Source of the DNA: Paraphysomonas bandaiensis
Taxonomy: Eukaryota > Protista > Chrysophyceae
Reading direction: 5' to 3'
NCBI GenBank assembly: GCA_965644295.1
Contig: CBFFRP010000449.1
Location: forward strand, 1-60,380
DNA length: 60,380 bases
This document shows, piece after piece, positions 5,757-39,166 of the stretch; the first letter of the stretch is position 1; each line of letters starts with the position of its first letter. Position numbers and translations under genes: made by a program. A model generated the notes under the pieces. It saw only the letters and a program-made list of their open reading frames with translations, was not told where the DNA came from and ran no database searches.

Positions 5757-6180
5757 GCTTATATGTATATATTCAGGAGTATATGAGACGATGAGACACA
5801 AGTCGATGCAGAGAGATTATACGCAATACTTAAATACTTATGAACTTAATTCACATGACTGTTCATTGTATTCAGATAATTGCAGTTCTCTCTGGTAATA
5901 ATTTTGATATGATTGATGATATTATCCCCTCATCTCATCTCGACATTCTGCTCTGCTCTGCTCTGGTCTGCACTGCTAGTCAACTGAAACTTAGCGACAC
6001 TTATCCCTACCGCACTATACATATATATATACTGTACATACTACACACTGCTGTGGATACATACATAGGCGTGTATGTAGAAGACGATTCCTATGACCGT
6101 TACAAAAATAGAATTTTTTGAGAAAGAGATTGTCATCACCAGCAGCAGTATAGGTATATATTGAGAAGAAAAAAAATGAT

Positions 6181-6522: not shown

Positions 6523-7664
6523 ATGGGAACATACTCAAGCAAAGACGTGTCTGAAGACTCTGGAGGATTACAGGATGGAATACCATCGCGAAATGATCGG
6601 AAAGAAGATGAAAAATTTCCAACCTATACTATGGTAATACTTTGAAAAATTTTATTTGATGAATTCTAATGTCTTTTCAGCCTCCTGCGGTGAATATCAT
6701 TGACAGTGAAGTACCTAAACTACCATCAGATCATGAAGGTATGATCGCGTCCTTTGCAAATAGTTATATATTTGTAGTAATTTGCTTTCAGAATATGTTC
6801 CGACGGTGTTCCGATGGGAACATGGTGGTCGAAATGTTTACATTACTGGGACATTTAATAATTGGGAGAAACAGGTTCGCGTTTTTTTCTTTGCGTAATA
6901 AGTATATAATTGTTGTTTATAGATTCCAATGCATCGTAGCGGAAACGATTTTACATATATTCATAATCTCAAGCGGGTATACCACAGAAAAACTTTAGTG
7001 TTGTTGAAATAACTGCTGAGTTTGTTAGGCAAAACATGCATATAAGTTTGTTGTCGATGATGAATGGCGTTTCGCTCCTGACCAGGTTGAACTGTGTAGA
7101 TGTGATCAATAAATTCCTTATTAGTTTTTACATAGCCTACTGTTGCTGATATTGAGGGAAGAATAAATAACTTCATTGATGTTAGCGAATTCAATCCGTA
7201 TATCGGTGATGACAGCTTCTTTGAGCGGAGTAAAGGTAAGTGAAATTGGAAACTGAGAGCAGTGTACTGATTAGGCGCAGAGCGAAAGATTCCAGACACT
7301 GATTTTCACCAAATAATTCCAGATGTTGATGAGGTGATGTTATTGTCCTGTTATCACTTCTTTGTGAATGATGTTGCTCTTACAGTATGCGAAAGAGCCC
7401 CCAGCTCTTCCACCACATCTGAGGCACATAATCCTGAATAAGGTATTCATTGTCTTGCTTGTTTTGTTGAATGTAACTTTCGTTTAGCCATCATCTTCGC
7501 TTGATGCGTTATCGTTGCCTCTTCCTCAACCCGTCTCGCTGAATCATCTATACTGTACAGCGATTAAAGATGGTATGATGGTGCTTGGGGTCACTGAGAG
7601 ATATAAACACAAATACGTTACTCAAGTATTTTATTCTTCAATGCCAATTACATCTAATGCGTAG
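6523..7664 (+). CDS. PRKAB: AMP-activated/SNF1 protein kinase beta subunit (CBM48 plus ASC domain), about 8 introns
   Basis: Manual splicing gives MGTYSS (myristoylation-type start), VPTVFRWEHGGRNVYITGTFNNW, KHAYKFVVDDEWRFAPDQ, EPPALPPHLRHIILNK, LNHLYCTAIKDGMMVLGVTERYKHKYVT and a TAG at 7662-7664. Confidence 0.93.
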
Positions 7665-7940
7665 ATTTTATCAAGTGTTCTGCTATATGCTGTTATATGG
7701 CTGATATAAAATTTTGAATGTCTTGACATAATGGTTGGCGATGTAATAATTAATAGTGTACAATGCAGACCTATATGTTTTTAATTGTTTCCTGTCGGGA
7801 AAGCTAAAGGGTAAACAACGTCGATTTTTCCCTTTCGAGTTATAGTATATTACTTAGAAGTTACAATAATGTAACACAAGAAACAGTTGTATTTCATTTG
7901 TGTTATAGTAGATGACGGGAAACGATCTCTTACGAGATAT

Positions 7941-7966
7941 AATAATAATAATAATAATAATAATAA
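7941..7966. repeat. (AAT)n microsatellite
   Basis: Read directly from the sequence. Confidence 0.9.
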
Positions 7967-8055
7967 AACATAGGATGCTTTTCATTAACCTCTTCAAATA
8001 GATCGTTTATTTAAAATATTATGTATTTACCACTGTCTTATCATAAATGCATATA

Positions 8056-8233
8056 TGAAAGTCTTATTAGCAATAGGCGTCAAGAATAATTACCAGATAA
8101 GTAGCTAGATGAAAACTAGCTAGAAAGGCTTTTACCTGTAACTAGCTAACTAGTGCAAATTCTCATATCCTACTATGTAACACAATGAAAACTGTTTGTG
8201 CGTAGCCGCAAGCACCAAGGTAAGGTGCGACCA
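8056..8233 (+). repeat. Dispersed repeat family X, partial copy
   Basis: TGAAAGTCTTATTAGCAATAGGCGT...TATCCTACTAT...GCCGCAAGCACCAAGG matches the reverse complement of 42780-42960. Confidence 0.8.
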
Positions 8234-9506
8234 ATTCCATTTTATTTTAAATACCTAAATACCTACAAATAAGTGTTCCAAACACTATACTTTATACTAT
8301 TTACGTCATTTAACAGTCATCATACACTTCTGTTATTTCAACTTATGTTATTCTTCTTAATATGTGCCTGTCATCTTCAACGGAATATAACTCGTCAGAG
8401 TCTCCTAGTTGCTAATATTGTATCCCCAAAGCCGCCCACTTTAATGAATAAGTTCGAACACATTACATGTTGTAATTTAATATAGTATGATCTCTAATTT
8501 CGAGATCTAGCATTGATATTAGACATTAGGTACCGTTCTTTGACTGCCCTAGCAGAGCAATATTTTACTGCAACAGTTTATCCTCTAACATGTCTCAATG
8601 AATAAAATTGTACGCCCGTCCGACCTGAGATTTGTCACTGGAAGCATCTAGATACATTCTACTTTTGTGTAAGAGGGTGGCCAGGTATCGCTGGGTGGGA
8701 GAAGGGCAACGCGAATATGCCGTCGTACTTATTATTGGAGGTTCTGTGTGCCTTCAAAAAACTAGCTAATTATGTGATATTATACCCGAATACTCATCTA
8801 ATTTGTGCTTGTGTATGTCGATCTTTATCGTCGAAAGTGAAGCATCCAGTTACTCGGAAAGTGATTCATTTCACATACTTCTTTCCACTGAAGAGGTGCC
8901 TTAATTCAACTTATATATAAGGTAAAGGCATGTATCACTTATCGATGTCATTCTTGTACGATTGTTCTACTACTCTATGGGTTATACCTGCGGTGGACAC
9001 ATCCATTCAGAACCAACTGAATATTTCTCAGATATCGCGAAAACTTAATGTATGATAAGTGATCATCATAATCGACAGTTTTTATATACCATTCGATTAA
9101 ATAAGCCTCATTTACGGTGGAATAAGAGTGCTATAGGGAGGTATGACTGAACCCAGCAAAAGATATGAAGATGCATCATGTCCCATATAGACGGCTGTGC
9201 CATTGGGGGCATATACACCGTATTCCTATGTATTCCTGTGTAATAAATATTACGTAGGAATTCCTGGTGACGGTGCTGCCTGGGATTCTACTACAAAGGA
9301 ATGAAAGCTCACTTCATCTCTCTATCCAATAGCATGACCCCATAGCATCGTGCTCTCGTACATATACTATCGTATACATACAGTACATACAGCATATCCT
9401 AGAGGAGATTACATACACAACAGTATAGTATAGCAGGGGACAGTAATAGAATCATACATACTCTCACCATACTCATTAACCAACCCTTATATATAGAAAC
9501 CAATCA

Positions 9507-11522
9507 ATGACAACAGAACAAACTACTTCAAATCAACCTAATGGCACAACATATTCTCATTTATTCGTCTTTTCTGGTTCGAATAAAGCAGGAATGGAAC
9601 AAAGCGATAAACAGAAACAAGCAGATGTTATCTATCAGATGTCTAAAAACAGTAAATTCTTTGAACATGAGAATAAACAAGATTTGAAACGAAAATCAAA
9701 AATAGAAGAAATTAAAAGAAAAGTTTCTGATATGAAAGATACGGATATACATGAGATGAATCCACGTATAGATAATATAATCATATCACTTGAAGAGAAA
9801 CGTAATCTTAATAGAATGTGTGTAGTGTTTGATATGGATATGTTTTTTGCTGCTGTTGCCATTCGTGATCGTCCGCATCTTGTGGATAAACCAGTTGCTG
9901 TGGGAGGTATGTCTATGATATCCACCACTAATTATGTAGCAAGAAAGCATGGTGTGCGCAGTGCTATGCCTGGATTTATTGGGAAACGATTATGCCCAGA
10001 ACTCATATTTGTTGAACACGAAGGGGAGAAGTATGCGGCTGCTTCTAAAATCGTTGGAAATATAATCCGAGAATACGACCCGGATTTCAAGTCATACAGC
10101 TTGGATGAATTTTTTGTGGACCTCACAGACGCAGTGAACAAAAAGTTAGGAGAGGGTCATACCGAGATCCCTGTGATTAGTAAGCGGGAGGTGGCTTGTG
10201 GAATTGCGGAGGAGATACGTTCTCGTATTCGGGTGGAAACCGGTGGTCTGACCTCCTCGGCTGGTCTCGCCAATAACTTCATGCTTGCTAAGATTTGTGC
10301 TGATGTAAACAAACCAAACGGTCAATTCTCTCTTCCCCCTGAGCGCAGCGCAGTATTGGAGTTCATGGACACTTTGCCGTGCCGTCGGGTAGGGGGAGTT
10401 GGGCGCGTCACAGAAAAGGCATTGAGTGAATTGGGTATGTCCACTATGGGAGAAGTGAGGAGGGGCCTAAATAAGGTTGTGTTTGGGTTCACTGAGTCAC
10501 AGGGGAAGTTTTTAACGCGGGCAAGCTTGGGGATTGGGAGTGAGGAAGTGAATGATACCGAAGAAAAGGAAAGTAGAGGTAGAAAGAGTGTAGGTGCAGA
10601 GCGGACTTTCTCGGCTATACAAGAGCCCGCACTTTTGATGGCGAAACTCTTGGAGCTGTGTGGTACAGTTAGTTCATCCCTGGAAAAGAAAAACTTATAC
10701 GCTGGTTCCCTCACTCTTAAATTGAAGTCAGTTAATTTTGAGGTAACTACAAGACGTTACTCCTACCCGCGTAGCCGTTTTGTGCGGACAACTGATGACC
10801 TCTTCGCTGCTGCGAGCAAGCTGCTCACTGCCTGCCTTCCTGTCCATGTGAGACTGATGGGAGTACAGGCTGGTAGACTAAGTTCAACAACTACCGGGCG
10901 TCCAGTATTGTCTGCAGAGGAAACACCACTAGGGCGGCTGCTATCTCGACAGACGGTTCAAAGTATGCCAGAGGGAAGTGGAAAGAGAAGACGAGAAGAA
11001 GAGGGAAATGAAGAGGTGATCAACCGTAGCCACGACCGCTTCTCCTGGGAAGAGAGTAGTTGTGGATCAGACCACTCACTTTCTTACATAGGAGCTGATG
11101 AAGACAGTAGAGACCAGTGTATATATCAAGAGGAGAGGGATCACGGCTTAGACAATGAAATTTCGCCATGGCCAGTACTTCTACACACGTCGCGTAGTTC
11201 GAATAGTGATGTCAACGGATATCTTGGTGGTAGTGATCGCACTGCAGTGAGTACTAGCAGTAGTAGTGCTGACGTAGTTGGTACCGTGTCCTCATCCGAG
11301 GTCAATTGTACTGCAGCAAATGATAGCCCGATAGAGAGGTGCACCTCAAGTTCTTCAACGGGTCCAAGTAGTGTTGAACTCAAGACCTCGTTTTCTTGTC
11401 CTATTTGCGGAGACCGTAGTAGTCGATCTCTGCTTTCACTTAACATACACCTTGATAAATGTTTGCTAAGAGCAAAAACGAAGAAAAAAAACATCACAAG
11501 TTATTTTGGTGTTTGTAAATAG
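9507..11522 (+). CDS. POLK: DNA polymerase kappa (Y-family, DinB)
   Basis: Motifs NKAGME, DMDMFFAAV, STTNYVARKHGVRSAMPGFIGKRLCP, SLDEFFVD, LAKICADVNKPNGQ and RKSVGAERTF. There is a C-terminal UBZ zinc finger (CPICG...LNIHLDKCL) and a PIP-like ITSYF. Confidence 0.96.
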   Translation: MTTEQTTSNQPNGTTYSHLFVFSGSNKAGMEQSDKQKQADVIYQMSKNSKFFEHENKQDLKRKSKIEEIKRKVSDMKDTDIHEMNPRIDNIIISLEEKRNLNRMCVVFDMDMFFAAVAIRDRPHLVDKPVAVGGMSMISTTNYVARKHGVRSAMPGFIGKRLCPELIFVEHEGEKYAAASKIVGNIIREYDPDFKSYSLDEFFVDLTDAVNKKLGEGHTEIPVISKREVACGIAEEIRSRIRVETGGLTSSAGLANNFMLAKICADVNKPNGQFSLPPERSAVLEFMDTLPCRRVGGVGRVTEKALSELGMSTMGEVRRGLNKVVFGFTESQGKFLTRASLGIGSEEVNDTEEKESRGRKSVGAERTFSAIQEPALLMAKLLELCGTVSSSLEKKNLYAGSLTLKLKSVNFEVTTRRYSYPRSRFVRTTDDLFAAASKLLTACLPVHVRLMGVQAGRLSSTTTGRPVLSAEETPLGRLLSRQTVQSMPEGSGKRRREEEGNEEVINRSHDRFSWEESSCGSDHSLSYIGADEDSRDQCIYQEERDHGLDNEISPWPVLLHTSRSSNSDVNGYLGGSDRTAVSTSSSSADVVGTVSSSEVNCTAANDSPIERCTSSSSTGPSSVELKTSFSCPICGDRSSRSLLSLNIHLDKCLLRAKTKKKNITSYFGVCK

Positions 11523-23737: not shown

Positions 23738-26700
23738 TTATTTCGATTCTGTTGGTGATGCAGTGCTAGAGGTTTCATATATGGAAACATCACTTTCTAC
23801 ATCGAAGTAAGTCATCGCAGAGATAGTATTCCAGATATCAACCCCACCACTGTCGCTGCTGACATCACTGCCACTGAGTTCCCACTTACTCTCGTTATCG
23901 CTTGCGCCGGATATATCATAACGAACCTCACATTCGTCGCTATAACTACTATAGTCTTCGCTGTCACTATTGCTCGTTGAGGCACTACTCAAATCAGTCC
24001 ACAAATCATCGCTACTTTGCTGGCCAATAGATTCAGATACACACTGCCTCCGACAGGACTGGGTCGGAATTGACATCTCTTCGATGGCAACATCGGACAC
24101 TTCAGGAGAAACTTGTCGACAAGTGGTTTGCACAATAGGCCGGCTACAAATCACTCCAAGTGGCATAGATTCGCTTTTTTTAACTGCAAAAGTAATATTA
24201 TCTTTCCTCCTCTCTCGTATAACTTTTGATGTCTTTGAATGCCTCATTTCATTCCCGGGAGGTAACGTATCACGAACTATTATCGGTTCGATACTGCTAC
24301 TTTTTCGAATTCCTATGGACTGCGACCTTTGCATAATCGATGATGCATTATTTAATCGACTTTTACTCTGTTCATGTGCTACCATATTGTGATGTTGAGC
24401 TATGTCATTCGACTTCGTATATATGGTGCCATTTTTGACGCCGGAAGATACACCCACTGCAACATTTTGGACGGGGGTGACAGCGCTTGGCTTCCTCACA
24501 TTGATAGACTTTTTCGGTACTGTTGTTTTTGAGAGTGGGGAGCGAACAGTTGGTGTGAGATGAATCCTAGGCAGGTCATCAACAATCGGACTTCGAAGCT
24601 GATTTTCTCGGTGTTCCATACTTTGTAGCATATGCTCAGTGAACCTTCGTCCCCTCTGCAGTTCATCTTTGCGAGAGAGGAGGCCATTGTCGGAGTTCAT
24701 ACTTCCATCATGTAATAGTGTGCTATCTGGGGTAACTACAGAGAGCTTGGATAATTGCCTTTCAATACTACTAGAGCCTCTGTTGTCAGTATATATCTCT
24801 TCCATCCGTCTTACCCGCTTATCATTGGTACCAGATTTCACCATAAAATGTATGATAATAACAAATGCAGCAAGAGGAATAAATGGAAGGAGTGGGTTTA
24901 CGCGAAAGAGTTGAATAAACAAGACAACAACGTATCCCAAACCTGATGTTAAAACTAGCTGCACGATAATATCCTGTGTGAGAGGTGGAATATTCATTAA
25001 TCCGGTTAAAAAAAATACAGCTACTTTGCTCATTGCTTGACCGAAGAACTGAAAACGTCGATTGTAGGACTCATTGACTTGCTTCTTGCTCTGTTTGAAA
25101 CTTCTCTTTGGCCATGGGGTAGAAAATTTGGAAATAACCCTGCTCTCAGGAATATCTGGAAATAAATAGGCAAGGCGGTAGGAAACGAATAAATATTTTG
25201 CGGCATTAAATTGAACAGCAGATTTTCCGGCAATAGCTTCATTCAGACTCATGTGCTTTTCGTGCTGTGCTGTTACTTGATTTTTATAACTCATGATATC
25301 AGCAAGTAACTTTCTCTTCACTTTTTGAACATCAGTGGAAATATACAGTGGAATAAGTAAGTGGGTCACGAAGACGACAGCTGAGCTGGCAAGTACGATT
25401 TCAAAAATTAACCAAATCACAAACGACCGAAACCACTGTAAACAATGTTAAACAGTATGATATAACCACTACAACACTTACCGCCACCTGTCTCTCACCA
25501 GACTGCATCATTGCAAATAAATACACATAAAATAGTAGAGCGGCATTCAGGATAATTACAAAAACCCAAGCCATGAATTTCACACCCCAGTTTATACTCG
25601 TTGTATTCTCTTCATCTCTTCTGTGTTTGTCCTCCAGTATTTGTCCATTGACTCCAACTAATAAATCTTTCACAAACAAATACAGAAGTTTTCTACTGAT
25701 ATGTTCTTTCTCAGATTCGAATTCTGTACGCCCGCTCGAGCTGAGCACAGAAGTAAACCTGGCATGCTCTTCAGCTACAACTTTTCGAATGGTTCGTAGT
25801 TCGTAAAAAAGCCTGCTATCTGATGACTGAGAAGAACAACCATTCCATACTGCCAACAACATATCACGAAAATATGATGTAAAATATTCATCCTCGTCCT
25901 TGTTAACAGTAAGTCCCCACCCATCTATGTCACGTCAGAAAAAATACATAACACGCAGTATAATAACGTACCATCAAAATCTCTACGTTGTTCTGGGGTT
26001 AATTGCTCCCTAAAGTTACATACTTCAGTTATCAAGTTGTAAAAATCTTCTTGGAGTGAGTTTCCACACACTTCACTTAGATTGACTTTCGCAGCACGGT
26101 CAGTCTGTTTCGATTCATCGGCTCGAGCCCATGCCTCATATTCCCAGTTGGCTTTTCGTGAGTACGTGTTTTTGGCCAAAATATTAGATATCACATACTG
26201 CACGGTCAGAGCAAATGGCGTACTAACTACTGCAGAGATAATGGCAACGATAACGACACGCTTTGTGCTATCTTTTATTTCCCTAAAATGGCACGAGCCC
26301 ACATCGTCATTGTCATTCCAGTAGCACATCGTTTCGTCATTACTTAGGCTAGATTTTTCGCTCAAACAATTTCTCTCATTGCTGTAGCTCTCACAAGAGC
26401 CATCATCTGGGTCAGCAATGTTATACGTCAAAGCTTCGATAAATAGCATAATAATAACGTTTGAGCAGAGAGAGAGAACTCGTAAAGCGCGAGGAAACGT
26501 TGCCGAATAGTAGAACACTATCCCCAGCCAGCGGTGATAGGTTTTTAATTCACACACAAACTTGTTCCACACGGTATTCGACCGTAGAACAGAAGGGAGG
26601 CTCTCCTCAATACGCTCAAACTCATGCTGCACTCGCATTTTGCTTTGTGTCGACTTACTGCGCACAAGTCGGGATGGGGAGCTGAAATGTAAGCGTTGTT

Positions 26701-29700
26701 TCAGTTTATTCTGAAGGGGCTTAACATTTTCCACAACGGCTTCAATTTTGTCCCTTTTCAGTTGACGCTTGTCAGCGCCATCAGCAGCCACTGTCATCAA
26801 TACGAACACCACCCCTATAAACATGCACGTCAATAGAACTTGCCAACTATCTCCAACTTTTTCTGCATCCAGATCGCCCGTGGATTTCCATGTCGTTATA
26901 AAATCTGATACCACTGTATCACTAACTGCCACAAACTCAACAGATATCCGTTCATCATTATTACCATAGTCATCATTTGATGCAAGCTGGCTGGAACGCT
27001 TCGCAGCAGTTAGATCACGAGGCAAGGTACAAGTACAAGTCGTGTTTTCAGTATTGTATGATATCAGCTGGCACGAACTCGAGGTCGACCCAATGGCATT
27101 ACAAGATGCAGATGGCTCAAACGACGGACAGGTAACCATAAATTCACCAGAACCAGATCCATTACACGCAATTACTACAGGACTACTCCCTAAACATTGT
27201 ACCTCGTGTATCTCCTCCACACCAGCAATACAGTGCACAAAACTCGTTGTCAAGTTTTCTTGTGACATTGTCCTCCAATTGAAAGTGATTTCATTATGCA
27301 GAACCACCGTCAATTCACAAGATTTGTTTGACAAATTGTCACACGGCAATTTCTCAAAGGATACCCCAAGAGGTAAAGACAGATACGAAGAGTTCAAATT
27401 TCTGGTGTCAAGTACCTCAAATACTGTAAGTTGAAGCGGAAGTATAGCACTTGGAATATAAAGATAAGGAGTAGCTTTTCCACTGAGATGTTCTAGAGTA
27501 GTTTTGGGGGTAGACAATTGAGCATTGTCACTTCTTGCAATTGTATATGACGACATTCGAAAAAAACTCGCAACGACATCAACTGCATTCTGACCATCCA
27601 CCATATCATTCATTACAAACTCACTGTACGTCTCCATCAGAGATATATACTCCTTGTCTTTTTTCAGTTCTGATGCTGAAAGCGCAAAGTCAATCACAGC
27701 ATCAATCCCCGTCAATTCTTCCACAGTCATACCCATATCTCTAGCTCTTTCGACAATATCTTCAGCAAGGACGGCCATCAATAATTTGGTTTTATCTGAC
27801 AAGTCATCCGGGTCACTGGCAAGGGAAGCCAGACCAACAACCCACGATTTCAGAGTATTGGGATCTGTATTCTCCAGGGTAGACAAGTTCCGTATACCTT
27901 CTGCAATCATATACCGCAAATCTAACAATACGCTGTGATCTTCTTCCTCGTAGGAGCACGAATACCCGGCGTATCCTCCAAAGCACACACACCGCGCCGT
28001 ACAATGGTAATCCAGTAAACCGCATTGTGGCAGTGAGATACTGGAGTTAAGTAAATGCATATACATGCAATGACCATGACCAGAACATGCGTTTGGACAT
28101 GTTCGTTGGATGTAACCACACATACCATCGAGCTTGCATTCCATAAAGAAATCACCTTCACAATCTAAATCAGAAGAGCATGAAGTGCCAACTGTAGATG
28201 ACGTCAATTTTCGTCGTGCCGTATCAGCATGTAGACATGGAGTGTTCGCATGTCCGGGGTTGCCGACGTAGCCGTCAAAGCAATTGCCGCATGTGAACAA
28301 AACAGTAGAGCAGTTCTCGCGATTGAGAAGCATACAATTCGGAGCTCGTGAACAATCTGTTATGCTAAGTATACTTGAGGTGGTGGCCAGTACATTCTTG
28401 AGCTCGTCCGCGTGTCCTTCCGAACCCAGTACACCGGCCAACAAAAACCCACCCAGATGATCTAACGACATCTCGACTTCATTCACCTCAACATCTTTTG
28501 ATGCATCCGAAAAAGCGTCTAGTTTATCGTATACATTTACTCGGCACCGTATTAAGTTGGAGTGTGATTTAGGGCCAGCCGGTAGCACAGTGGAGGTATA
28601 GGCGATAGTTTGCCTTGACCTCAGCACAACACTAGTCCCTCCGAGGGACTCATAGCCGAACTCATACGTGATTGGTATATCTGAAAAGTAATCATATAAA
28701 AAGCAAAGGTACTTATATACGAGCATTACCTGTATCATCCCACTGGAAAGCAGAGAAGTAGAATGTTGTATTCAACATAATACCAGTGGTCGGTGTTATC
28801 TCAAATTGCCCAACAATGGGAGGTGAATTTGTAGAGACTTCAATTGAGCTGCTTTCTGAAAACCCATTTTCTAGCGAACAGAATAATGTGAAAACAAAAG
28901 ACGACCGTTCCGGAAGTGTATTAGGTACAAGTACAAGGCTCACTGTAACACTTTGGATACTGTCGTCCTCTGAACTGGATGTCAAATATGGAATATCTTT
29001 CGATATTGGAGAAAGTGAAGAATCCACAAGAGAAATTGATGGATCATTAATTGACCACAAAATATTTCCACTTGATTTAACATCTATGTTGGCTAGAAGT
29101 CTAAGTTTGTTTGACGGATTTATTCGTGTTCCACCACGGGAAGACAATGAAATGACTGGTGAAAGAGAGTTAAGCACAGTTAATACTACCACAACCTCAG
29201 ATGTTCTTGAGTCCAAGGGGTTTTTTGATGATGCAATTATTCTGAAATGGAATACATCCCTAACAGATACTTCGGTAGACGAGGACGCATCGACTGACAC
29301 CCGAATAGCATCAGGTGAAATGTGCTCCATCAATAGTCCACATACACTACTGTAGGATGGTAATATTCTATTGCACTCGAAATTAAACTTCAGGTCAGCA
29401 TTCGAGCCAAATGCGCTTTCAATATCTTCGTCATAGCTTGACGATAAATCGATGACAGCAGAACCGTCAATTCTCATCCCTAAATCATATCCACCTGATA
29501 CGACACACACTATACTACCAGTCACCACAAACAGCTGCATAGTAGCAGTTGAAGACTTAAGTGATTCGAGGTGTCTTACAGTTAAAGTGACACTGTACAA
29601 CTCACCCACCACCAGGCTGTATGCAGGCAACTTGAATTCCCGAGGATTAACAGAAACAGATTTCAGCGCTTGAACACTTCCTCTTAAATAAACTTTCCAG

Positions 29701-32700
29701 TCGAAATGTAAGTTCCTGGTGCTCTTTTTACCATCACACTCAAATGTATAGCTGCTCCCGAATACTGTGTAGCTCCTGTTCCTATAAAAAAACACCTTGC
29801 TATCAATACAGTTGAATCATTGCAATGATATGTACCTATGAACAAAAAGAGGGGACTGAGAGTTGATAAAAACAACAGGAACGCTCTTCGAAGAGGACAC
29901 AACAAATGGATGTGCCCCTCTGCCGCACGCATGTAGAAAGTTGCACAAAATAACAATAACATTGTACGCATTTTTTTCATAAAGGTATATTTGAGGTATA
30001 ATTATAGGAGTGGTCACAGAGGTAACAGTGGAGTTAAGGTAAGCTTGAAGTTCTGAAACGTTTAACTGGCTACTTTCAACTGTAATTGAAAAAGAAGACC
30101 AAGGCCGTCCACCAGTCCCGGTGGAGCTAGTTAAGTCGAGAGTAAGTGGGTCACATGGACCAATAACAGCAGGGGATGATATTGACACTCTTGGAAGATC
30201 AACAATCTCTGGAGCGGCAACAGAGACACTTTGCAATGAGTTATACTTCCAGCTGCTACATGTTGGATCAACAGAGGATGTACACTTCGACTTAAGCATG
30301 CCAGCATTCAAGGTAAGTGTTGCCCCAACAGTGATACCGCTGTTGCCTGTTGAAAACATATCCACAGTTGCTTCATTTACCCAGGTACAAGTCACCGACG
30401 AATCAATGCCAGTAAAATCAAAGAGCTCATTACATTTGAAAGTGACTGAACTATGTGCCTTGTTAGTTTTGTCATTGAATAACACTGTTACTTTGCTTCC
30501 ATCACTTGAAAAAACAGCAGACTTCAATACCGGTGGATCTGGCTCCACTTCAGTACTTCTTACTCGAAATATTTTAGCGTTACGATGTACAACCTCGTAG
30601 TCATGCCTCGACGGCCCCAACAGAGTAATATTCAAAACGTAATCACCACCTACGTGGCGCACATATGTTAACGAGACACTTTTTCGCGGTGATGCACTTG
30701 AAAATAGGTATTCAGTCGGTAAAAATGGATATATGACAGTGCCAGTAGCTTCATGGAAAGCAGATACGCTAATACGTAAATATTCACTGGGTAAAATATC
30801 CACTGATAATGTAACCGCCGCAGAAGAATCATCATTGTCTGAAAAAGTCATTTGATTTAATTTCACAGCAATGCTTCGGCAGCAAAGGGTATCAACAGTT
30901 GTCTTCGTGTTTTGCATTAGCGTAGCATCCATGGGGACTTCTGTCGGAGAATATGTAGCACAATAAACATCATACGTAGAGGCAGGTATTAGACCTGTGA
31001 TCTTGTATATCGCAGAAGTTGTCGCAACATCCTTTAGGGAGTTACCGATTAAGAGAATGGCAGTAGCCGTAGGAACGTAAGCAGTAGAGGAATAATAGGC
31101 AGCACAAACCAGAGACCCAGTCCCACTCAATTCCACATATAATGTAATCGTAGTACTAGATGAAAAACCAGATACCGATTTTATAACTGGTGCCGGAGAC
31201 AGTTCATCGAAGTCTACGACCAGCATGGTCAATTTTCCAATAGGACTCGCGGAGAAATGATTACATGATACTTCATGAATAAACTCCCTCTCCTTACTTG
31301 CCATGCCACAATATCCAGAACAGTTAACACACAAGACAGCTTCTAAATTCCCATCGCATTTCAATACACTCCACTCGCTATTACCACAAACATGAGTAGC
31401 TTCATAAGAGCTCGCCGACGCACTAGCAGCCTTGATTTCATTCACAACATTACTCACAATCAACTCATCACCACATTCTGCTTGTGCTGAAGTGGATGGA
31501 AAATTTATATTGCTGATGCTTATCAGAGCGATATATGACGGAGTATGAGTGATCAGTGCTGCAGGTATATGATCGTAAACAAATACTCGCCACTCCGTGC
31601 ATGTACCATACACTTGCTCATTTCGAAGTGACAGATCCGTATACAACAGGCGTTTCACAGTCGCCAAGGAAGATTCGTAGTACTCTAAATACTCATTCCA
31701 CTGAGTCAAAAAAGACAACGATGGTGCCAGCGAAGGTGTACCAGTCGGTGGCACAGAATAAGTTGGAGATAGAGTCGGGGAAAACGTTAATGTCGGGTAT
31801 AACGTTATGGTTGGTTCTTCAGCCGGCGTATCTGTTGGACGGAAAACAGGAAAACCACTAGGACTCAGTGAAGGATATGCGTGAGGAAAGCCTGTTGGTA
31901 GAGCACTTGGTATAGCAGATGGCGTCGAGGATGGGATCTCACTCGGGAAGTGACTGGGAACACCAGAAGGCAATGAAGTCGGGGTCGACAAAGGTATCGA
32001 TGTAGGAGCACAACTTGGTTTCCCTGATGGCTGCATTGTAGGAATGCTACTCGGCAAACAGGTCGGTTCTCCAGATGGTAGACTTGTTGGGGAACTACTA
32101 GGTGATGTAGGATTGCTACTTGGTACACTACTCGGCGTCCCGGTAGGCTGCATACTAGGAGAAGTTGGCATCAAAGTTGGTTGACCTGATGGTTCTCCAG
32201 ATGGTAAACTCGTCGGAGATGTCGGCTGAGAAGTAGGTATCGATGTAGGAACATAACTTGGTTTCCCTGATGGCTGCATGGTAGGAATACTGCTCGGAAA
32301 ACTGGTTGGTTGTCCAGATGGTTCACCGGATGGTAGACACGTTGGGGAACTACTCGGCGATGTAGGGTGGCCACTTGGTACACTACTCGGCGTCCCTGTT
32401 GGCTGCATACTAGGAGAAGTTGGTTTCAATGTTGGTTGACCTGATGGTTCTCCAGATGGTAAACCCGTCGGAGATGTCGGCTGAGAAGTAGGTATCGATG
32501 TAGGAACATAACTTGGTTTCCCTGATGGCTGCATTGTAGGAATGCTGCTCGGAAAACTGGTTGGTTGTCCTGATGGTTCACCGGACGGTAGACACGTTGG
32601 GGAACTACTCGGTGAAGTAGGGTAGCTGCTTGGTACACACGTTGGGGAACTACTCGGCGATGTAGGGTTGCTGCTTGGTACACCACTTGGCGTCCCTGTT

Positions 32701-35700
32701 GGCTGCATACTAGGAGAAGTTGGTAACAGTGTTGGTTGACCTGATGGTTCTCCAGATGGTAAACCCGTCGGAGATGTCGGCTGAGAAGTAGGTATCGATG
32801 TAGGAACATAACTTGGTTTCCCTGATGGCTGCATTGTAGGAATGCTGCTCGGAAAACTGGTTGGTTGTCCTGATGGTTCACCGGACGGTAGACACGTTGG
32901 GGAACTACTCGGTGAAGTAGGGTAGCTGCTTGGTACACACGTTGGGGAACTACTCGGCGATGTAGGGCTGCCACTTGGTATACCACTTGGCGTCCCTGTA
33001 GGCTGCATGCTAGGAGAAGTTGGTAACAGTGTTGGTTGACCTGATGGTTCTCCAGATGGTAAACTTGTCGGAGATGTCGGCTGAGAAGTAGGTATCGATG
33101 TAGGAACATAACTTGGTTTCCCTGATGGCTGCATTGTAGGAACGCTGCTCGGCAAACAGGTCGGTTCTGCAGATGGTTGTCCAGATGGTACACAGGATGG
33201 AGTTGAACTAGGCGTTGCAGATGGAGCTGCAGATGGTTTCCCACTCGGTAGACACGATGGAAGTCTGCTTGGTATACTTGTTGTGGGTACAGAAGTAGGC
33301 GTACAACTAGGTGAACTTGATGGAGTATGACTCGGTTCACCTGATGGTGAACTAGTAGGACATTTTGAAGGGTTGCATGTTGGTGTACTGGAGGGTAAAG
33401 AAGATGGCGAGCATGTTGGCATGGACGGTGCAGAAGTGGGTTGACTAGTAGGTGACGAAGACGGGATCGAAGAAGGCAATGTCGAAGGGGAAACAGTTGG
33501 TAGACTTGTGGGAGTAACACTTGGACAGCTGGTAGGTACGCCAGAAGGTGCAGTTGGCAAACTGGAAGGAATGCTTGTCGGTGATGTCGGTGAACCAGAC
33601 GGAAAACTTGTCGGTGATGTAGGTGAAGCAGAGGGAACACTTGTCGGTAAACCAGAAGGAACACGGGTTGGAGATGTCGGAAGGGAAGTAGGATTGCTAC
33701 TTGGTACACTACTCGGCGTCCCGGTAGGCTGCATACTAGGAGAAGTTGGCAACAATGTTGGTAAACCTGATGGTTCTCCAGATGGTAAACTCGTCGGAGA
33801 TGTCGGCCGAGAAGTAGGTATCGATGTAGGAACATAACTTGGTTTCCCTGATGGCTGCATAGTAGGAATACTACTCGGCAAAAACGTCGGTTCCAGAGAA
33901 GGTTTTCCAGATGGTATATAGGTAGGAATGCTGCTCGGTGAAGTAGGGTTGCAACTTGGTACACTACTTGGCGTCCCTGATGGCAGCATTGTAGGAATGC
34001 TACTCGGCATACAGGTAGGTTCACCAGAAGGTGCTCCTGATGGTAGACACGTTGGGGAACTACTCGGGGAAGTAGGGTAGCTGCTTGGAACACTACTCGG
34101 GGAAGTAGGGTTGCTGCTTGGTACACCACTTGGAGTCCCTGTTGGCTGCATACTAGGAGAAGTTGGTAACAATGTTGGTTGACCTGATGGTTCTCCAGAT
34201 GGCAAACCCGTCGGAGATGTCGGCTGAGAAGTAGGTATCGATGTAGGAATATAACTTGGTTTCCCTGATGGCTGCATTGTAGGAATGCTGCTCGGCAAAC
34301 AGGTCGGTTCTCCCGATGGTTCACCGGACGGTAGACACGTTGGGGAACTACTTGGGGAAGTAGGGTAGCTGCTTGGTACACACGTTGGGGAACTACTCGG
34401 CGATGTAGGGTTGCTGCTTGGTACACCACTCGGCGTCCCGGTAGGCTGCATACTAGGAGAAGTTGGCATCAATGTTGGTTGACCTGATGGTTCTCCAGAT
34501 GGTAAACTTGTCGGAGATGTCGGCTGAGAAGTAGGTATCGATGTAGGAACATAACTTGGTTTCCCTGATGGCTGCATTGTAGGAATGCTGCTCGGCAAAC
34601 AGGTCGGTTCTCCAGATGGTAGACTTGTTGGGGAACTACTCGGGGACGTAGGGCAGCTGCTTGGTACACCACTCGGCGTCCCTGTTGGCTGCATACTAGG
34701 AGAAGTTGGTAACAGTGTTGGTTGACCTGATGGTTCTCCAGATGGTAAACCCGTCGGAGATGTCGGCTGAGAAGTAGGTATCGATGTAGGAACATAACTT
34801 GGTTTCCCTGATGGCTGCATTGTAGGAATGCTGCTCGGCAAACAGGTCGGTTCTCCCGATGGTTCACCGGACGGTAGACACGTTGGTGAACTACTTGGGG
34901 AAGTAGGGTAGCTGCTTGGTACATACGTCGGGGAACTACTTGGCGATGTAGGGCAGCTGCTTGGTACACCACTTGGAGTCCCTGTTGGCTGCATACTAGG
35001 AGAAGTTGGCATCAAAGTTGGTTGACCTGATGGTTCTCCAGATGGTAAACTTGTCGGAGATGTCGGCTGAGAAGTAGGTATCGATGTAGGAATATAGCTT
35101 GGTTTCCCTGATGGCTGCATTGTAGGAATGCTGCTCGGCAAACAGGTCGGTTCTCCTGATGGTAGACTTGTTGGGGAACTACTTGGCGATGTAGGGCAGC
35201 TGCTTGGTACACCACTCGGCGTCCCGGTAGGCTGCATACTAGGAGAAGTTGGCATCAATGTTGGTTGACCTGATGGTTCTCCAGATGGTAAACTTGTCGG
35301 AGATGTCGGCTGAGAAGTAGGTATCGATGTAGGAACATAACTTGGTTTCCCTGATGGCTGCATTGTAGGAATGCTGCTCGGCAAACAGGTCGGTTCTCCA
35401 GATGGTAGACTTGTTGGGGAACTACTCGGGGACGTAGGGCAGCTGCTTGGTACACCACTCGGCGTCCCTGTTGGCTGCATACTAGGAGAAGTTGGTAACA
35501 GTGTTGGTTGACCTGATGGTTCTCCAGATGGTAAACCCGTCGGAGATGTCGGCTGAGAAGTAGGTATCGATGTAGGAACATAACTTGGTTTCCCTGATGG
35601 CTGCATTGTAGGAATGCTGCTCGGCAAACAGGTCGGTTCTCCCGATGGTTCACCGGACGGTAGACACGTTGGTGAACTACTTGGGGAAGTAGGGTAGCTG

Positions 35701-38700
35701 CTTGGTACATACGTCGGGGAACTACTTGGCGATGTAGGGCAGCTGCTTGGTACACCACTTGGAGTCCCTGTTGGCTGCATACTAGGAGAAGTTGGCATCA
35801 AAGTTGGTTGACCTGATGGTTCTCCAGATGGTAAACTTGTCGGAGATGTCGGCTGAGAAGTAGGTATCGATGTAGGAATATAGCTTGGTTTCCCTGATGG
35901 CTGCATTGTAGGAATGCTGCTCGGCAAACAGGTCGGTTCTCCTGATGGTAGACTTGTTGGGGAACTACTTGGCGATGTAGGGCAGCTGCTTGGTACACCA
36001 CTCGGCGTCCCTGTTGGCTGCATACTAGGAGATGTTGGTAACAGCGTTGGTAAACCTGATGGTTCTCCAGATGGTAAACTCGTCGGAGATGTCGGCTGAG
36101 AAGTAGGTATTGATGTAGGAACATAACTTGGTTTCCCTGTTGGCTGCATGGTAGGAATACTGCTCGGCAAACAGGTCGGTTCTCCCGATGGTAGACACGT
36201 TGGGGAACTACTCGGGGAAGTAGGGTTGCTGCTTGGTCCACCACTCGGTATCCCTGTTGGCTGCATACTAGGAGAAGTTGGTAACAATGTTGGTAAACCT
36301 GATGGTTCTCCAGATGGTAAACTCGTCGGAGATGTCGGCTGAAAAGTAGGTATCGATGTAGGAACATAACTTGGTTTCTCTGATGGCTGCATGGTAGGAA
36401 TGATGCTCGGCAAACAGGTCGGTTCTCCTGATGGTACATACGTTGGGGAACTACTCGGCGATGTAGGGTTGCTACTTGGTACACCACTCGGTATCCCTGT
36501 TGGCTGCATACTAGGAGAAGTTGGTAACAATGTTGGTAAACCTGATGGTTCTCCAGATGGTAAACTCGTCGGAGATGTCGGCTGAAAAGTAGGTATCGAT
36601 GTAGGAACATAACTTGGTTTCTCTGATGGCTGCATGGTAGGAATGATGCTCGGCAAACAGGTCGGTTCTCCTGATGGTACATACGTTGGGGAACTACTCG
36701 GCGATGTAGGGTTGCTACTTGGTACACCACTCGGCGTCCCTGTTGGCTGCATACTAGGAGAAGTTGGTAACAATGTTGGTAAACCTGATGGTTCTCCAGA
36801 TGGTAAACTCGTCGGAGATGTCGGCTGAGAAGTAGGTATCGATGTAGGAACATAACTTGGTTTCTCTGATGGCTGCATGGTAGGAATGATGCTCGGCAAA
36901 CAGGTCGGTTGTCCAGATGGTACACCGGATGGTACAAACGTTGGGGAACTACTTGGTAAAGATGTTGGTTGACCTGATGGTTCTCCAGATGGTACACTAG
37001 AAGTGCTTGGTATAGTCGTAGGAAAAAATGTAGGGTGAGGAGTAGGGGCATGACATTCATGTACCGATGTTTGTGAAATGTAAAATATTTGCAATGCCGA
37101 TAGCTCACACAATGCACGTGGATAAATAGCATTCATGTAGTTACCATACAATTCCAGGCGGGTGAGATGTATTAAATTCGCAAACGAATCAGGGACAGAT
37201 CCCGTGAAAGAGTTCTCTCCCATATAGAGCACTGTAAGACTAGTCATGCTTCCCATACTAGGAGGAAGTGAACCTGTTAGGGCATTACTCCAAAAACTCA
37301 TATCCGCAACATTCTGCAAATTCCCAATTTCTGAGGGAATTGATCGACTCATGAAATTCGAAAACAAACGAAACTCACTTAGTCGTGACAATGATCCAAT
37401 ATTTTTAGGAATACTTCCAGTCAAACTATTTCTACTGATATCGAGATAGTAAAGTGCGGATAACTTTCCGATGTCAGAGCTCAATGTACCTGTAAAACTA
37501 TTGAGATCCAGATCAAGAAATTCCAGAGTATGAAGGCTGTAGACAGATGACGGTAAACTTCCTTCAAACATATTATCGTAAACGTCCAAGTATTGCAATG
37601 ATTTCAAAACAGTAAATGAGTCCGGAAGACTACCGCTGAAAGAATTCCTATATAATGAGAACACCTGTAAGTTGGAAAGAGCCGAAATACCATAAGAAAT
37701 TGTGCCCACAAAATAATTATCACTCAAATCAATTTTAACAAGACTTATCATTCTTGAGAGTGTATGTGGTATACTACCAGACAAAAGATTTCTGTCTAAA
37801 GCTAATGCAGTGAGCTTGGTTAAGTACCCAATGCTATCAGGAATCGTGCCTTCGACTGAGTAGTTTGGGAGCATAATACTTGTTATATGTCCTACCGAAT
37901 CGCAGTACACACCTGACCAATTACACTTCTGGTGAATCAAATTAACATTCCAATCGACGATCGCAGAGGTCGAAGAAATAAAATCACGTAGAAATATATC
38001 TTCCCGGAAGTCATAAGCATATGCAACATCCAACTGTAGTACTCTTACTCTGTGTTCATCTAAGATTACTGCGACACTCTCATCTGGAGATACTGCTATA
38101 CTTTGTATAGAGCTAAAAGTAGCTAATGTTCCGATACCGTCATCGTACCCTGAGAACCCAGGCTCACCAGCAACACGACGCACGTCAGATACAACCATAT
38201 TCAAGCGGTGTACAAAGTTACCGCTGTATGTAACAAAAGCAACACTATCATTGTACGTGAGTGTAATACCTAAAGGTAACGTGTTCGAGGCACTTGAATA
38301 TAACGTTGATACAGTGCAACTGGATAGAAGGATCTTCCTGATGCATTTATTCTTCATGTCTGTGACGAGGACAAAAGTATTATCCGAAGAGATTGCCAGG
38401 GATGTCGGGTCAGCAAACTTCGCATTAGTACCAATTCCGTCAGAGTGTCCCATTTGGCCTGATCCAGCTATAGTACTAACAGCTTTTGTACTCAACGTTA
38501 TCTTTCGAATGCGATGTGTTGCATCACATACAATGGCAAAACCATTATCGGAGGACAACGCCAGTCCTAATGGGCCATCAAACAGTGCCGCAGTACCAAT
38601 AGAATCAATGTAGCCGGAAGACGAGCCAGCAAGAGTCGATACATGAGTAGTCGAAAAAATAATCTTGCGAATGCGGTGATTAGAATGATCAGATATAAGC

Positions 38701-39166
38701 CCCATTGATGCATCTGAGGAGACAGAAATACCCCACGGGTAATTGAAGAGCGCGTATGTACCAATATCATCAGACCATCCACTACTTCCACTTTTTCCAG
38801 CAATCGTGGATACTTCTCCAGACAACAAGTTAACCTTTCGTAACACGTTGTTCATAGAATCGGATACGTATGCCACGTTTGAGAGTGGACCAAATGCAAC
38901 ACCAACAGGGGTGTCAAACTTGGCGGCGGAACCGATACCATCTTCATAACCATTAGTAGATCCCGCCACAGTTATAGTGTAATATCCATCAGTCACTGCA
39001 AGGAAAGAGTCATAAGAGAACCCAAATTTGAAAAAAATATTGCTCACAGCAAGTATATGTTAAGAACAAACCCACCTGTCGAAGTCAATGGTATTATTGT
39101 CGACGCTAGCGTCAAGTTATACGTCAATAACACTAAACCAACACCAACAAAACAATATGACATCAT
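23738..39166 (-). CDS. Giant (~5000 aa) polycystin-1-like surface receptor: signal peptide, NHL propeller, LRRs, PT/PS stalk, REJ, EGF-like, GPS-like, ~8 TM
   Basis: ORFs 29817-39047, 28713-29795, 25925-28738, 25401-25862 and 23738-25420 are joined by short GT-AG introns. A signal-peptide exon at 39166-39076 (MMSYCFVGVGLVLL...) splices in phase. Confidence 0.85.
31900..37020 (-). repeat. Coding minisatellite for a Pro/Ser/Thr stalk, with 243-bp and 300-bp units and a 786-bp higher-order duplication
   Basis: Repeated PSGEPTCLPSSIPTMQPSGKPSYVPTSIPTSQPTS. Shadow ORFs recur at offsets of 243 (36148/36391/36634) and 786 (34469/35255). Confidence 0.95.

Follow-up and report, generated by a model that had tools for sequence, protein, structure and literature searches.

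Does the minus strand between positions 39166 and 23738 of a contig of the chrysophyte Paraphysomonas bandaiensis (GCA_965644295.1, CBFFRP010000449.1) encode one receptor, and to which known system is its membrane base related? The window, i.e. the whole stretch of DNA that was analysed, comprises 60,380 nt, and an earlier note made from its letters had described here a single modular receptor gene, with an NHL and LRR head on a mucin-like stalk and a polycystin base. Here we report that the region probably holds one intact gene of six exons, encoding a multi-pass surface receptor of 5,050 aa that shares a reduced polycystin-1-type core with a large family of protist proteins.

The gene (39166-23738; all features below lie on the minus strand) runs from an ATG at 39166 to a stop codon at 23740-23738 and is interrupted by five introns of 46-80 nt, all with GT-AG borders. 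The coding sequence of 15,150 nt, a sum over exons that is divisible by 3, specifies 5,050 aa, close to the ~5000 aa estimated earlier, and none of the exons contains an in-frame stop. The splice sites are predictions drawn from reading frames and paralogues, and searches and structure models were run on single exons or intronless paralogues rather than on the spliced 5,050-aa protein.

Exon 1 (39076..39166) comprises the start codon and a hydrophobic, signal-peptide-like N-terminus (30 whole codons), where the earlier note had placed a signal peptide; its frame runs on into exon 2 across a GT donor after 39076 and intron 1 (38996..39075, 80 nt). Exon 2 (29836..38995, 9,160 nt) is based on a single open frame at 39047-29817 and encodes the NHL propeller, the LRRs, the stalk and a beta-rich region ahead of the REJ domain. 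It is followed by intron 2 (29782..29835, 54 nt), exon 3 and intron 3 (28729-28681, 49 nt), the latter of which interrupts REJ. Exon 4 (25972..28680, 2,709 nt) encodes the end of REJ, a Cys-rich module, a GAIN domain and TM1-TM3. Intron 4 (25925..25971, 47 nt), which is shared with the nearest paralogue and absent from others, separates it from exon 5 (25482..25924), with a cytoplasmic helical loop and TM4; after intron 5 (25436..25481, 46 nt, GTAAGT...AG), exon 6 (23741..25435) encodes TM5, a conserved cytoplasmic loop, a weak helix, TM6, TM7 and a Ser-rich tail. The domain order is thus signal peptide, NHL, LRRNT and LRRs, stalk, REJ, Cys-rich module, GAIN, TM helices and Ser-rich tail, and the elements that the earlier note had listed are present where it had placed them, on the minus strand. 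Intron 5 is masked in the list of open reading frames, where it appears as two overlapping frames. Its splicing restores the family motif RQxAW at the junction, and paralogue L001 lacks this intron. An alternative donor 6 nt upstream would remove two residues of RQxAW, both of which the GTAAGT donor restores, and was rejected for that reason. Paralogue alignments continue straight through junctions 4 and 5.

It is very improbable that the region is not one functional gene, i.e. that two or more neighbouring genes have been read as one, that the locus is a pseudogene, or that it is an artefact caused by repeats in the assembly. The exon joins are predictions, the units of the stalk are 92-95% identical and could be mis-assembled, and the genome contains incomplete and disrupted family members at other places, e.g. 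as matches with stops. The exons themselves, however, are free of in-frame stops; the five short introns restore the frame and the family motifs exactly, with a total divisible by 3; REJ extends across exons 3 and 4, and the TM module across exons 4-6; and the order of domains is the same in intronless paralogues and metagenomic relatives. The claim of a single modular receptor gene with its head and stalk is therefore supported, at the level of a predicted gene model.

The head consists of two modules, both of which the earlier note had recognised. A six-blade NHL beta-propeller (38004..38993) is supported at the sequence level by Pfam (NHL, 3.1e-10) and by six blade motifs with a spacing of ~55 residues. 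It is followed by an LRRNT-like cap and ~11 plant-type LRRs (37056..37925), identified by Pfam (LRR_8, 2e-23; LRR_1, 9e-23; LRR_14, 2.7e-19) and by a period of strictly 24 residues, with ten regular repeats and flanking ones. The cap motif, CNWSGVYC at 37925, was identified by eye, and Pfam LRRNT_2 gave no match on it. The cap motif and the 24-residue repeat type (LxxLxLxxNxFxGxLP) are shared with plant LRR receptor-like proteins and kinases (LRRNT_2). In contrast to the kinases, the gene has no Pkinase match in any exon and carries a seven-helix module instead of a single TM helix, and its LRRs form a head module that is paired with an NHL propeller on an unrelated base.

The head is connected to a mucin-like stalk of 1,747 aa (31815..37055), one third of the protein, which was delimited by composition (26% P, 26% S, 14% T), Cys spacing, TRF and a Pfam PT repeat at its C-terminal end (2.9e-7). 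It contains 41 Cys residues with recurring spacings of 63/18/25/12, which agrees with the regularly spaced Cys residues of the PT/PS stalk in the earlier description, and is made up of tandem units of 81-100 aa (TRF periods of 243-300 nt).

The REJ-like region of the earlier note scored above the Pfam cut-off. The matched part of the domain (PF02010; 28460..29717) is distributed over exon 3 (1.4e-22, 80.3 bits, cut-off 25, profile positions 12-343) and exon 4 (7.5e-6, 25.2 bits, profile positions 344-420), and because the two matches are contiguous on the profile, the REJ domain spans intron 3. In a scan of the organism's own genome, the REJ of this gene scored 2.1e-19. Between REJ and GAIN lies a Cys-rich, EGF-like module (27947..28354) with family-invariant Cys columns in both alignments (A2 and A3) and small beta elements in the structure model; the Cys-rich stretch around CPNACSGHGHC, previously called EGF-like, is therefore present, but Pfam returned no EGF match, even at E<=5.

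By its modelled fold alone, the region directly ahead of TM1 is a GAIN domain (26918..27946), with a six-helix subdomain A and a beta-sandwich subdomain B. The AF2 model that covers it (exon 4 of the gene) had a pLDDT of 77.9, and a Foldseek search with it returned GAIN domains of adhesion GPCRs as all of its top eight hits (best 1.6e-7); VIA aligned the GAIN model with BAI3 (Z 18.4, 255 aa, rmsd 4.8), GPR110 (Z 16.7) and CELSR1 (Z 16.0). The Pfam profiles GPS and GAIN gave no match up to E 5 in any exon or in two paralogue bases. The canonical GPS cleavage motif (HL-T / H-x-S/T; the latter as given in PMC13062082) is absent, the sequence after the CxC motif being TLPRD..., and none of 106 relatives has HL[ST] within 4 residues of CxC. 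The GPS-like motif of the earlier note thus stands with regard to the fold of the domain, but not as a cleavage motif.

The last two GAIN strands are connected by a flexible loop with a dibasic KR (26996..27001), which ends 11 residues past CxC, the median position in the family; the loop has a pLDDT below 50 in the AF2 model. A dibasic pair follows CxC in 68 of the 106 relatives, whereas 500 shuffles gave 16.1 +/- 3.3 on average and never more than 28. Most of these relatives have RR[L/V/M], this gene has KR, and the next residue is Leu in 40 of 63 cases. Among the genes sampled in the genome, 20 of 27, including the present one, have the motif and 7 of 27 do not. The genome contains at least 25 Peptidase_S8 loci and no match to P_proprotein, the P-domain of kexin and furin. 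Judged from this sequence pattern, the dibasic GAIN loop is likely a convertase site, with the KR of this gene as the candidate. The KR loop occupies the position of the GPS cleavage site in canonical GAIN domains.

The membrane module begins with TM1 (26783..26845; hydropathy 2.66, a helix in the model), which is followed by TM2 (26417..26485) and, after a conserved extracellular loop with four Cys residues (26413-26285), by TM3 (26177..26257, from hydropathy). TM4 (25577-25509, exon 5) comes after the cytoplasmic helical loop, and exon 6 adds TM5 (25423-25343), a weak hydrophobic helix (25024-24989) after the conserved cytoplasmic loop, TM6 (24970-24905) and TM7 (24892-24839). The remaining 366 aa (24838-23741; 18% Ser) form the disordered Ser-rich tail that the earlier note had described. 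Its count of about eight TM segments is reduced to seven strong helices, the eighth being only the weak hydrophobic segment; the choice of seven is based on hydropathy and the positive-inside rule. The N-terminus would accordingly lie outside, with seven crossings and the tail inside. The loops are large (first intracellular loop ~90 aa, TM3-TM4 ~200 aa, TM5-TM6 ~120 aa); in the models, the ~90 aa between TM1 and TM2 fold into short helices without a beta-sandwich, and only two or three helices follow TM5.

The fold of this module was modelled on the intronless paralogue L002, which is ~35% identical to the gene, whose own module is split over three exons. In a comparison of the AF2 model (pLDDT 82.5, pTM 0.80) with the full PDB, VIA ranked polycystin-1 first (8z6b_A; Z 15.7, rmsd 3.9, 201 aa) and the runner-up at Z 6.5; the Z scores of helical bundles can be high by chance, and the ceiling given by VIA itself is ~13-14. 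L002 residues 5-491 align with residues 3063-3610 of polycystin-1, and the match stops at 3610, which corresponds to TM5. The model reproduces the polycystin-1 pattern of TM1, cytoplasmic loop, TM2, Cys-rich outer loop and TM3, and continues in the same manner with a cytoplasmic helical loop of ~200 aa and a TM4-TM5 hairpin. The gene's own TM1-TM3 also aligned with 8z6b_A in VIA (Z 7.3, 143 aa, 18% identity). Foldseek, run with the same module model against PDB, missed polycystin-1 and gave nothing better than E 0.2, and a profile of the module searched against PDB sequences returned no polycystin, only low-complexity noise from the Ser-rich tail. As modelled, TM1-TM5 is of the polycystin-1 type, by a structural match that has no counterpart in sequence profiles.

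Pfam gave no match to PLAT (PF01477), PKD_channel (PF08016) or 7tm, up to E 5, and the absence of PF08016 includes exons 4-6; since the same scan found PKD_channel elsewhere in the genome, it is functional. The earlier statement that neither PLAT nor a channel pore domain is recognisable therefore holds even at E<=5. The polycystin base that the same note had proposed is retained in its REJ (by Pfam), its GAIN fold and the structure of TM1-TM5, and is unmatched by the profiles for GPS, GAIN, PLAT, PKD_channel and 7tm. That note had also held that a failure of the GPS and TM regions to match polycystin profiles would speak against its reading; both regions do fail, and the link to polycystins is structural only.

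These results bear on two related readings. The first takes the protein for a genuine orthologue of polycystin-1, i.e. a PLAT-bearing receptor or channel subunit with 11 TM helices and with polycystin-2-type channels as its assembly partners. REJ, GAIN and the polycystin-1-like TM1-TM5 are indeed present, and the 18 PKD_channel matches in the genome offer possible partners. This reading is nevertheless largely refuted, with only a very slight probability left to it, because neither PLAT nor PKD_channel is matched by any exon up to E 5, short helices and not a beta-sandwich make up the TM1-TM2 loop, the structural match ends at residue 3610, two or three helices lie beyond TM5 in place of six with a TOP domain, and the only PLAT match of the genome is weak and located elsewhere. 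A 7,778-aa ORF with PKD_channel on C66 was considered as a polycystin-1-like "missing link" and rejected as unrelated to the receptor family; it encodes a polycystin-2-type channel behind a giant cytosolic N-terminus resembling SPRY, LRR and ankyrin domains.

The second reading, an adhesion-GPCR-type receptor in which GAIN sits on a seven-helix GPCR fold with a tethered agonist and coupling to heterotrimeric G proteins, is quite unlikely. It would account for a GAIN domain directly ahead of TM1, for a count of seven strong TM helices and an N-terminus on the outside, and for a weak likeness to GPCR bundles of classes B and C (Z 4-6.7). However, GPCR folds reached Z 6.7 or less against the module model, which is background level compared with the Z of 15.7 for polycystin-1; a 7tm match in Pfam and the H-x-S/T motif (PMC13062082) are both lacking, and loops of ~90, ~200 and ~120 aa are unlike those of any GPCR class. 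What the gene shares with adhesion GPCRs (class B2: BAI, latrophilin, CELSR, GPR110, GPR126) is the GAIN fold (Z 15-18), its position directly ahead of the first TM helix and a long adhesive ectodomain, and several animal members are likewise resistant to cleavage. It differs from them in its membrane domain, which structure search shows not to be a GPCR fold and which does not match 7tm_2, in the lack of H-x-S/T, and in an insertion of 25 residues between the last two GAIN strands.

The reading of a receptor on a reduced polycystin-1-type core gains weight from the size of the family. The genome contains 88 matches to REJ and 83 to the receptor base, and with ~88 such genes the family is real and not a one-off. 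A word-index search with exon 4 of the gene found nothing at E<=1e-8, and one with a paralogue base found two relatives only, a yield that justified an exhaustive profile search; the latter recovered 4,919 representative relatives from public data (E<=1e-3), nearly all of them without a name. The nearest clusters in the ESM Atlas likewise have neither a name nor a Pfam family. In many relatives a single match covers all 1,071 positions of the profile, and the core from GAIN to TM7 is kept end to end, including cytoplasmic loops with strongly conserved motifs. The swappable tips that the earlier note had anticipated were found among the paralogues, whose heads comprise NHL only, LRR arrays, NHL plus LRR, or a C-type lectin placed straight on the same membrane module; one metagenomic relative has several NHL propellers. 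Paralogue L007 is short and combines a lectin head with the whole TM module in the absence of a stalk.

The protein could also serve chiefly in a structural coat or in adhesion, as a membrane-anchored mucin to which scales, mucilage or prey are attached. The membrane module would then be no more than an anchor, and the conserved basic motif would be unrelated to processing. The long stalk, which evolves by tandem duplication, the very large family with variable heads and the lack of any enzymatic or known signalling domain (Pfam) in the cytoplasmic parts are all compatible with such a role, which we regard as unlikely. A single helix would suffice as an anchor, whereas the GAIN-TM7 core is conserved over thousands of relatives, together with its cytoplasmic loops, and the stalkless L007 retains the entire TM module.

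In comparison with the polycystin-1 family (PKD1, PKD1L1-3, PKDREJ, suREJ), the gene has in common a large modular ectodomain, REJ, a GAIN domain abutting TM1, and the fold of TM1-TM5, in which TM3 and TM4 are joined by a large cytoplasmic loop and TM4 and TM5 form a tight hairpin (8z6b chain A); polycystin-1 and suREJ proteins likewise bear lectin and LRR heads. In contrast to polycystin-1, it lacks PLAT in the first cytoplasmic loop, the channel-like half TM6-TM11 and the TOP domain, with only two or three further helices in their stead, and has the conserved dibasic loop in place of the HL-T motif of the GPS. Its membrane part has no detectable sequence similarity to polycystin-1, and ~88 copies per genome stand against a handful. 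Related, too, are the PKD/REJ-like proteins of the stramenopile Ectocarpus, which have REJ, GPS and 6-7 predicted TM segments, no described PLAT or channel and a fast-evolving extracellular region (PMC4700764, PMC3879662). One of them, Esi0130_0068, has 1,427 aa and a reported GPS domain match and is, according to its description, male-gamete-specific (PMC4700764, PMC3879662). Of these two proteins, only ours has an NHL/LRR head and a mucin stalk, and the Pfam GPS profile does not match it; as compared by description, the Ectocarpus proteins probably belong to the same core family. In view of ~88 genes, thousands of public relatives and the published REJ/GPS/7-TM proteins of Ectocarpus (PMC4700764), the term "undescribed protein system" used in the earlier note was too strong.

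We infer a function in adhesion or sensing. The head would bind a particle, prey or a cell-surface ligand far from the membrane, because a stalk with heavy O-glycosylation would adopt an extended form. A secretory convertase of the subtilisin type would cleave the GAIN loop, leaving the cut ectodomain held on solely by the last GAIN strand; a pull on the head would then unmask or dislodge this strand and alter the state of the seven-helix module, which may signal via its large cytoplasmic loops and a probably phosphorylated tail. More broadly, we propose tentatively, and with rather less than even confidence, that the self-cleaving GPS has been replaced in this family by an inserted RR[L/V/M] or KR loop that is cut by an S1P- or kexin-like protease. 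Such licensing by a protease would yield a non-covalent pair of ectodomain and membrane stub with a tethered last strand, and the stub would be a free-standing TM1-TM5 module of polycystin-1, an ancient signalling unit that predates the fusion with PLAT and the channel half.

The signalling of polycystin-1 and the role of its TM1-TM5 half are open questions in kidney-disease biology. If our reading is true, the family represents an abundant natural version of the minimal REJ-GAIN-TM1-5 unit, far from animals and without the PLAT and channel half, which would mean that this unit can stand alone and would make thousands of sequences available for covariation studies and mutational work. The dibasic loop that is conserved at the position of the GPS points to another route by which a GAIN domain may be armed. 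For the organism, a probable bacterivore with a genome of 62.6 Mb, the ~88 giant receptors, whose propeller, LRR and lectin heads are interchangeable, are prime candidates for the recognition of prey, particles or mates.

The minus strand of the receptor region carries five long ORFs that abut or overlap, and reading the junctions in three frames revealed short GT-AG introns between them. The predicted gene has six exons (39166-39076, 38995-29836, 29781-28730, 28680-25972, 25924-25482 and 25435-23741, all on the minus strand), separated by introns of 80, 54, 49, 47 and 46 nt and followed by a stop codon at 23740-23738; the exons total 15,150 nt, or exactly 5,050 codons. The predicted joins find support in three independent checks at the sequence level. 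The Pfam REJ profile runs unbroken over the exon 3/4 join, with position 343 ending exon 3 and position 344 starting exon 4. Splicing restores the family motif FD-x-x-WG at the exon 4/5 junction, where the nearest paralogue also has an intron and other paralogues have none, and the motif RQxAW at the exon 5/6 junction (GTAAGT donor), where the nearest paralogue lacks an intron. Searches and structure predictions used single exons or intronless paralogues as input. The architecture claimed in the earlier note for positions 23738-39166, namely NHL repeats, leucine-rich repeats (LRRs), stalk and REJ, was recovered in this one predicted gene.

The exon 1 product has a hydrophobic, signal-peptide-like start. 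The first domain encoded by exon 2 consists of six NHL blades (Pfam NHL, 3.1e-10) and is followed by the LRRNT-like sequence CNWSGVYC and about 11 LRRs with a strict 24-residue period (Pfam LRR_8, 2e-23; LRR_1, 9e-23). Elsewhere in the genome, LRR residues 521-613 of this head recur at 90% identity in a fragment (contig C432:247339-247620, plus strand) that contains two stop codons and probably represents a pseudogene fragment of recent origin or a gene-conversion donor. The stalk (37055-31815, minus strand; 1,747 aa) consists of 26% P, 26% S and 14% T, contains 41 cysteines with recurring spacings, and is encoded by tandem units of 243-300 nt that are 92-95% identical and therefore point to a recent expansion. 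Identical 167-aa alternative-frame ORFs in the stalk (34469-34972 and 35255-35758, minus strand) were rejected as genes, being by-products of the tandem repeat in a second frame. Between the stalk and the REJ match, a beta-rich stretch that Pfam leaves unassigned is conserved with the relatives P0001 and P0002. C-terminal of REJ lies a Cys-rich module whose cysteines are invariant across the family; it gave no Pfam EGF match.

The Pfam GPS and GAIN profiles did not match the receptor. An exon 4 segment (28189-25973; 739 aa) was folded on an alignment that combined paralogues and relatives (mean pLDDT 77.9). In the model, six helices form a first subdomain, and a beta-sandwich comes next, its closing strand just before TM1. 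The best eight Foldseek matches in the PDB were all GAIN domains of adhesion GPCRs (probability 1.00 each), led by BAI2 (1.6e-7) and followed by BAI3, CELSR1, GPR110, latrophilins and GPR126. An exhaustive structure aligner gave Z 18.4 for BAI3 (255 aa, rmsd 4.8), with the next matches at 16.7, 16.0, 15.6 and 15.2. On the predicted structure, the receptor's own GAIN fold is established. GAIN domains have been reported outside animals (PMC3321182).

Of the seven strong helices identified by hydropathy analysis, exon 4 encodes three, exon 5 one and exon 6 the other three; exon 6 also encodes a weak 12-residue hydrophobic segment ahead of TM6. K and R are abundant in the loop ahead of the weak segment and at the start of the tail, which leads us to prefer a topology of seven crossings that leaves the tail inside. 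Since the membrane module is spread over three exons, that of the intronless paralogue L002 (contig C291; about 35% identical to the receptor) was folded instead (686 aa; pLDDT 82.5, pTM 0.80). Foldseek found nothing in the PDB (best E 0.2). In an exhaustive scan of 48,161 chains, the lone outlier was human polycystin-1 in the PC1/PC2 complex (8z6b chain A; Z 15.7, next 6.5), with residues 5-491 of the model matching 3063-3610 of polycystin-1, i.e. TM1 to TM5 (201 residues, rmsd 3.9). The receptor's own TM1-TM3 matched the same chain with Z 7.3 (143 residues, 18% identity). In polycystin-1, TM3 and TM4 are joined by a large cytoplasmic loop and TM4 and TM5 form a tight hairpin; both features recur in the receptor module. 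Judging from a single predicted paralogue model and a single PDB entry, the fold of TM1-TM5 appears to be polycystin-1-like. The relationship is structural only, since a profile of the module found no polycystin-1 sequence among PDB sequences. GPCR bundles reached only Z 4-6.7 against the modelled module, compared with 15.7 for polycystin-1, and an adhesion GPCR identity was therefore rejected. The ESM Atlas cluster nearest to the L002 module, an unnamed one of 119 members (score 0.95), carries a viral label (Nucleocytoviricota) on the record of a single member; this may reflect a copy of the module in a giant virus or a host contig that was mislabelled.

The canonical GPS motif, as given in PMC13062082, is H-x-S/T after CxC. 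The receptor has TLPRD after CxC, then a low-confidence loop of about 25 residues up to the last GAIN strand; its GPS site is non-canonical. Among 162 proteins, nearly all from the matches listed, 106 had a recognisable CxC-loop-strand-TM1 arrangement, and none of these had HL[ST] at the site. A dibasic pair was present in the loop of 68 of the 106 (shuffled loops: 16.1 +/- 3.3, maximum 28, 500 shuffles). It was nearly always RR, lay a median of 11 residues past CxC (range 7-17) and was directly followed by Leu in 40 of 63 cases. The dibasic loop occurred in 20 of 27 family genes sampled in the genome, spanning divergent subfamilies; the receptor's pair is KR and ends exactly at position 11 after CxC. 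S1P-type and kexin/furin-type subtilases recognise motifs such as R-x-L-x and RR/KR. Peptidase_S8 is found at no fewer than 25 loci in the genome, which gave no P-domain match. From these motifs we infer that the dibasic GAIN loop may undergo subtilase-type cleavage.

The surveyed genome (62.6 Mb, 669 contigs) contains 88 REJ matches above the Pfam cut-off, nearly all within ORFs of 1,400-7,900 aa, and 83 matches to the receptor's GAIN-TM region at about 60 distinct loci. NHL and LRR units occur in many family ORFs singly, combined or in arrays; the heads are modular. The 1,077-aa paralogue L007 (C351:7500-15500, plus-strand ORF 2879-6109) joins a C-type-lectin-like head straight onto the same seven-helix module without REJ, GAIN or stalk, and the membrane module is thus a separable unit. 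Tandem clusters (at least four members on C475:65000-134400, about ten on C66:208000-316000) and near-identical copies on different contigs (e.g. loci L022, L024 and L025) suggest that duplication was recent or that contigs are allelic or duplicated. Directly downstream of one family member (L004, C276:134000-143900), a 1,043-aa ORF (plus strand, 6699-9827) resembles a copia-type retrotransposon, its features being gag-like, zinc-knuckle and integrase-like. The genome also has 18 PKD_channel matches. One of these (C66:166225-166911) lies in a 7,778-aa minus-strand ORF (L028, C66:164500-174400) that ends in a polycystin-2-type channel (TOP-like region, six TM helices), has a cytosolic-looking N-terminus with SPRY-like, RNI-type LRR and ankyrin-like regions, and is unrelated to the REJ family.

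A profile of the Cys-rich-GAIN-TM core (1,071 positions), searched against 1.84 billion proteins, found 4,919 representative proteins at E<=1e-3, of which 1,840 reached E<=1e-30; many of the matches cover the profile end to end in one stretch. All ten relatives checked were metagenomic and unnamed or 'hypothetical'. Relative P0016 combines REJ with 26 PT repeats, and several NHL propellers are present in relative P0035 (5,874 aa). The literature search found only the 'PKD/REJ-like' proteins of Ectocarpus, of which Esi0130_0068 (1,427 aa; REJ, GPS, 6-7 TM helices) is male-gamete-biased and under positive selection (PMC4700764, PMC3879662).

The polycystin base proposed in the earlier note thus holds in part. 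REJ, GAIN and the predicted TM1-TM5 fold are common to polycystin-1 and the receptor, whereas the receptor base lacks PLAT, TOP/PKD_channel, TM6-TM11 and the GPS motif; judged on PLAT, the channel half or the GPS motif, it falls outside the polycystin-1 family. The description that fits the receptor best is that of a reduced, free-standing REJ-GAIN-TM1-5(+2) core with interchangeable heads. In the mechanism we prefer, a protease would license activation of GAIN, with a cleavage step that we consider plausible at somewhat less than even chances, and the receptor would serve in adhesion or mechanosensing.
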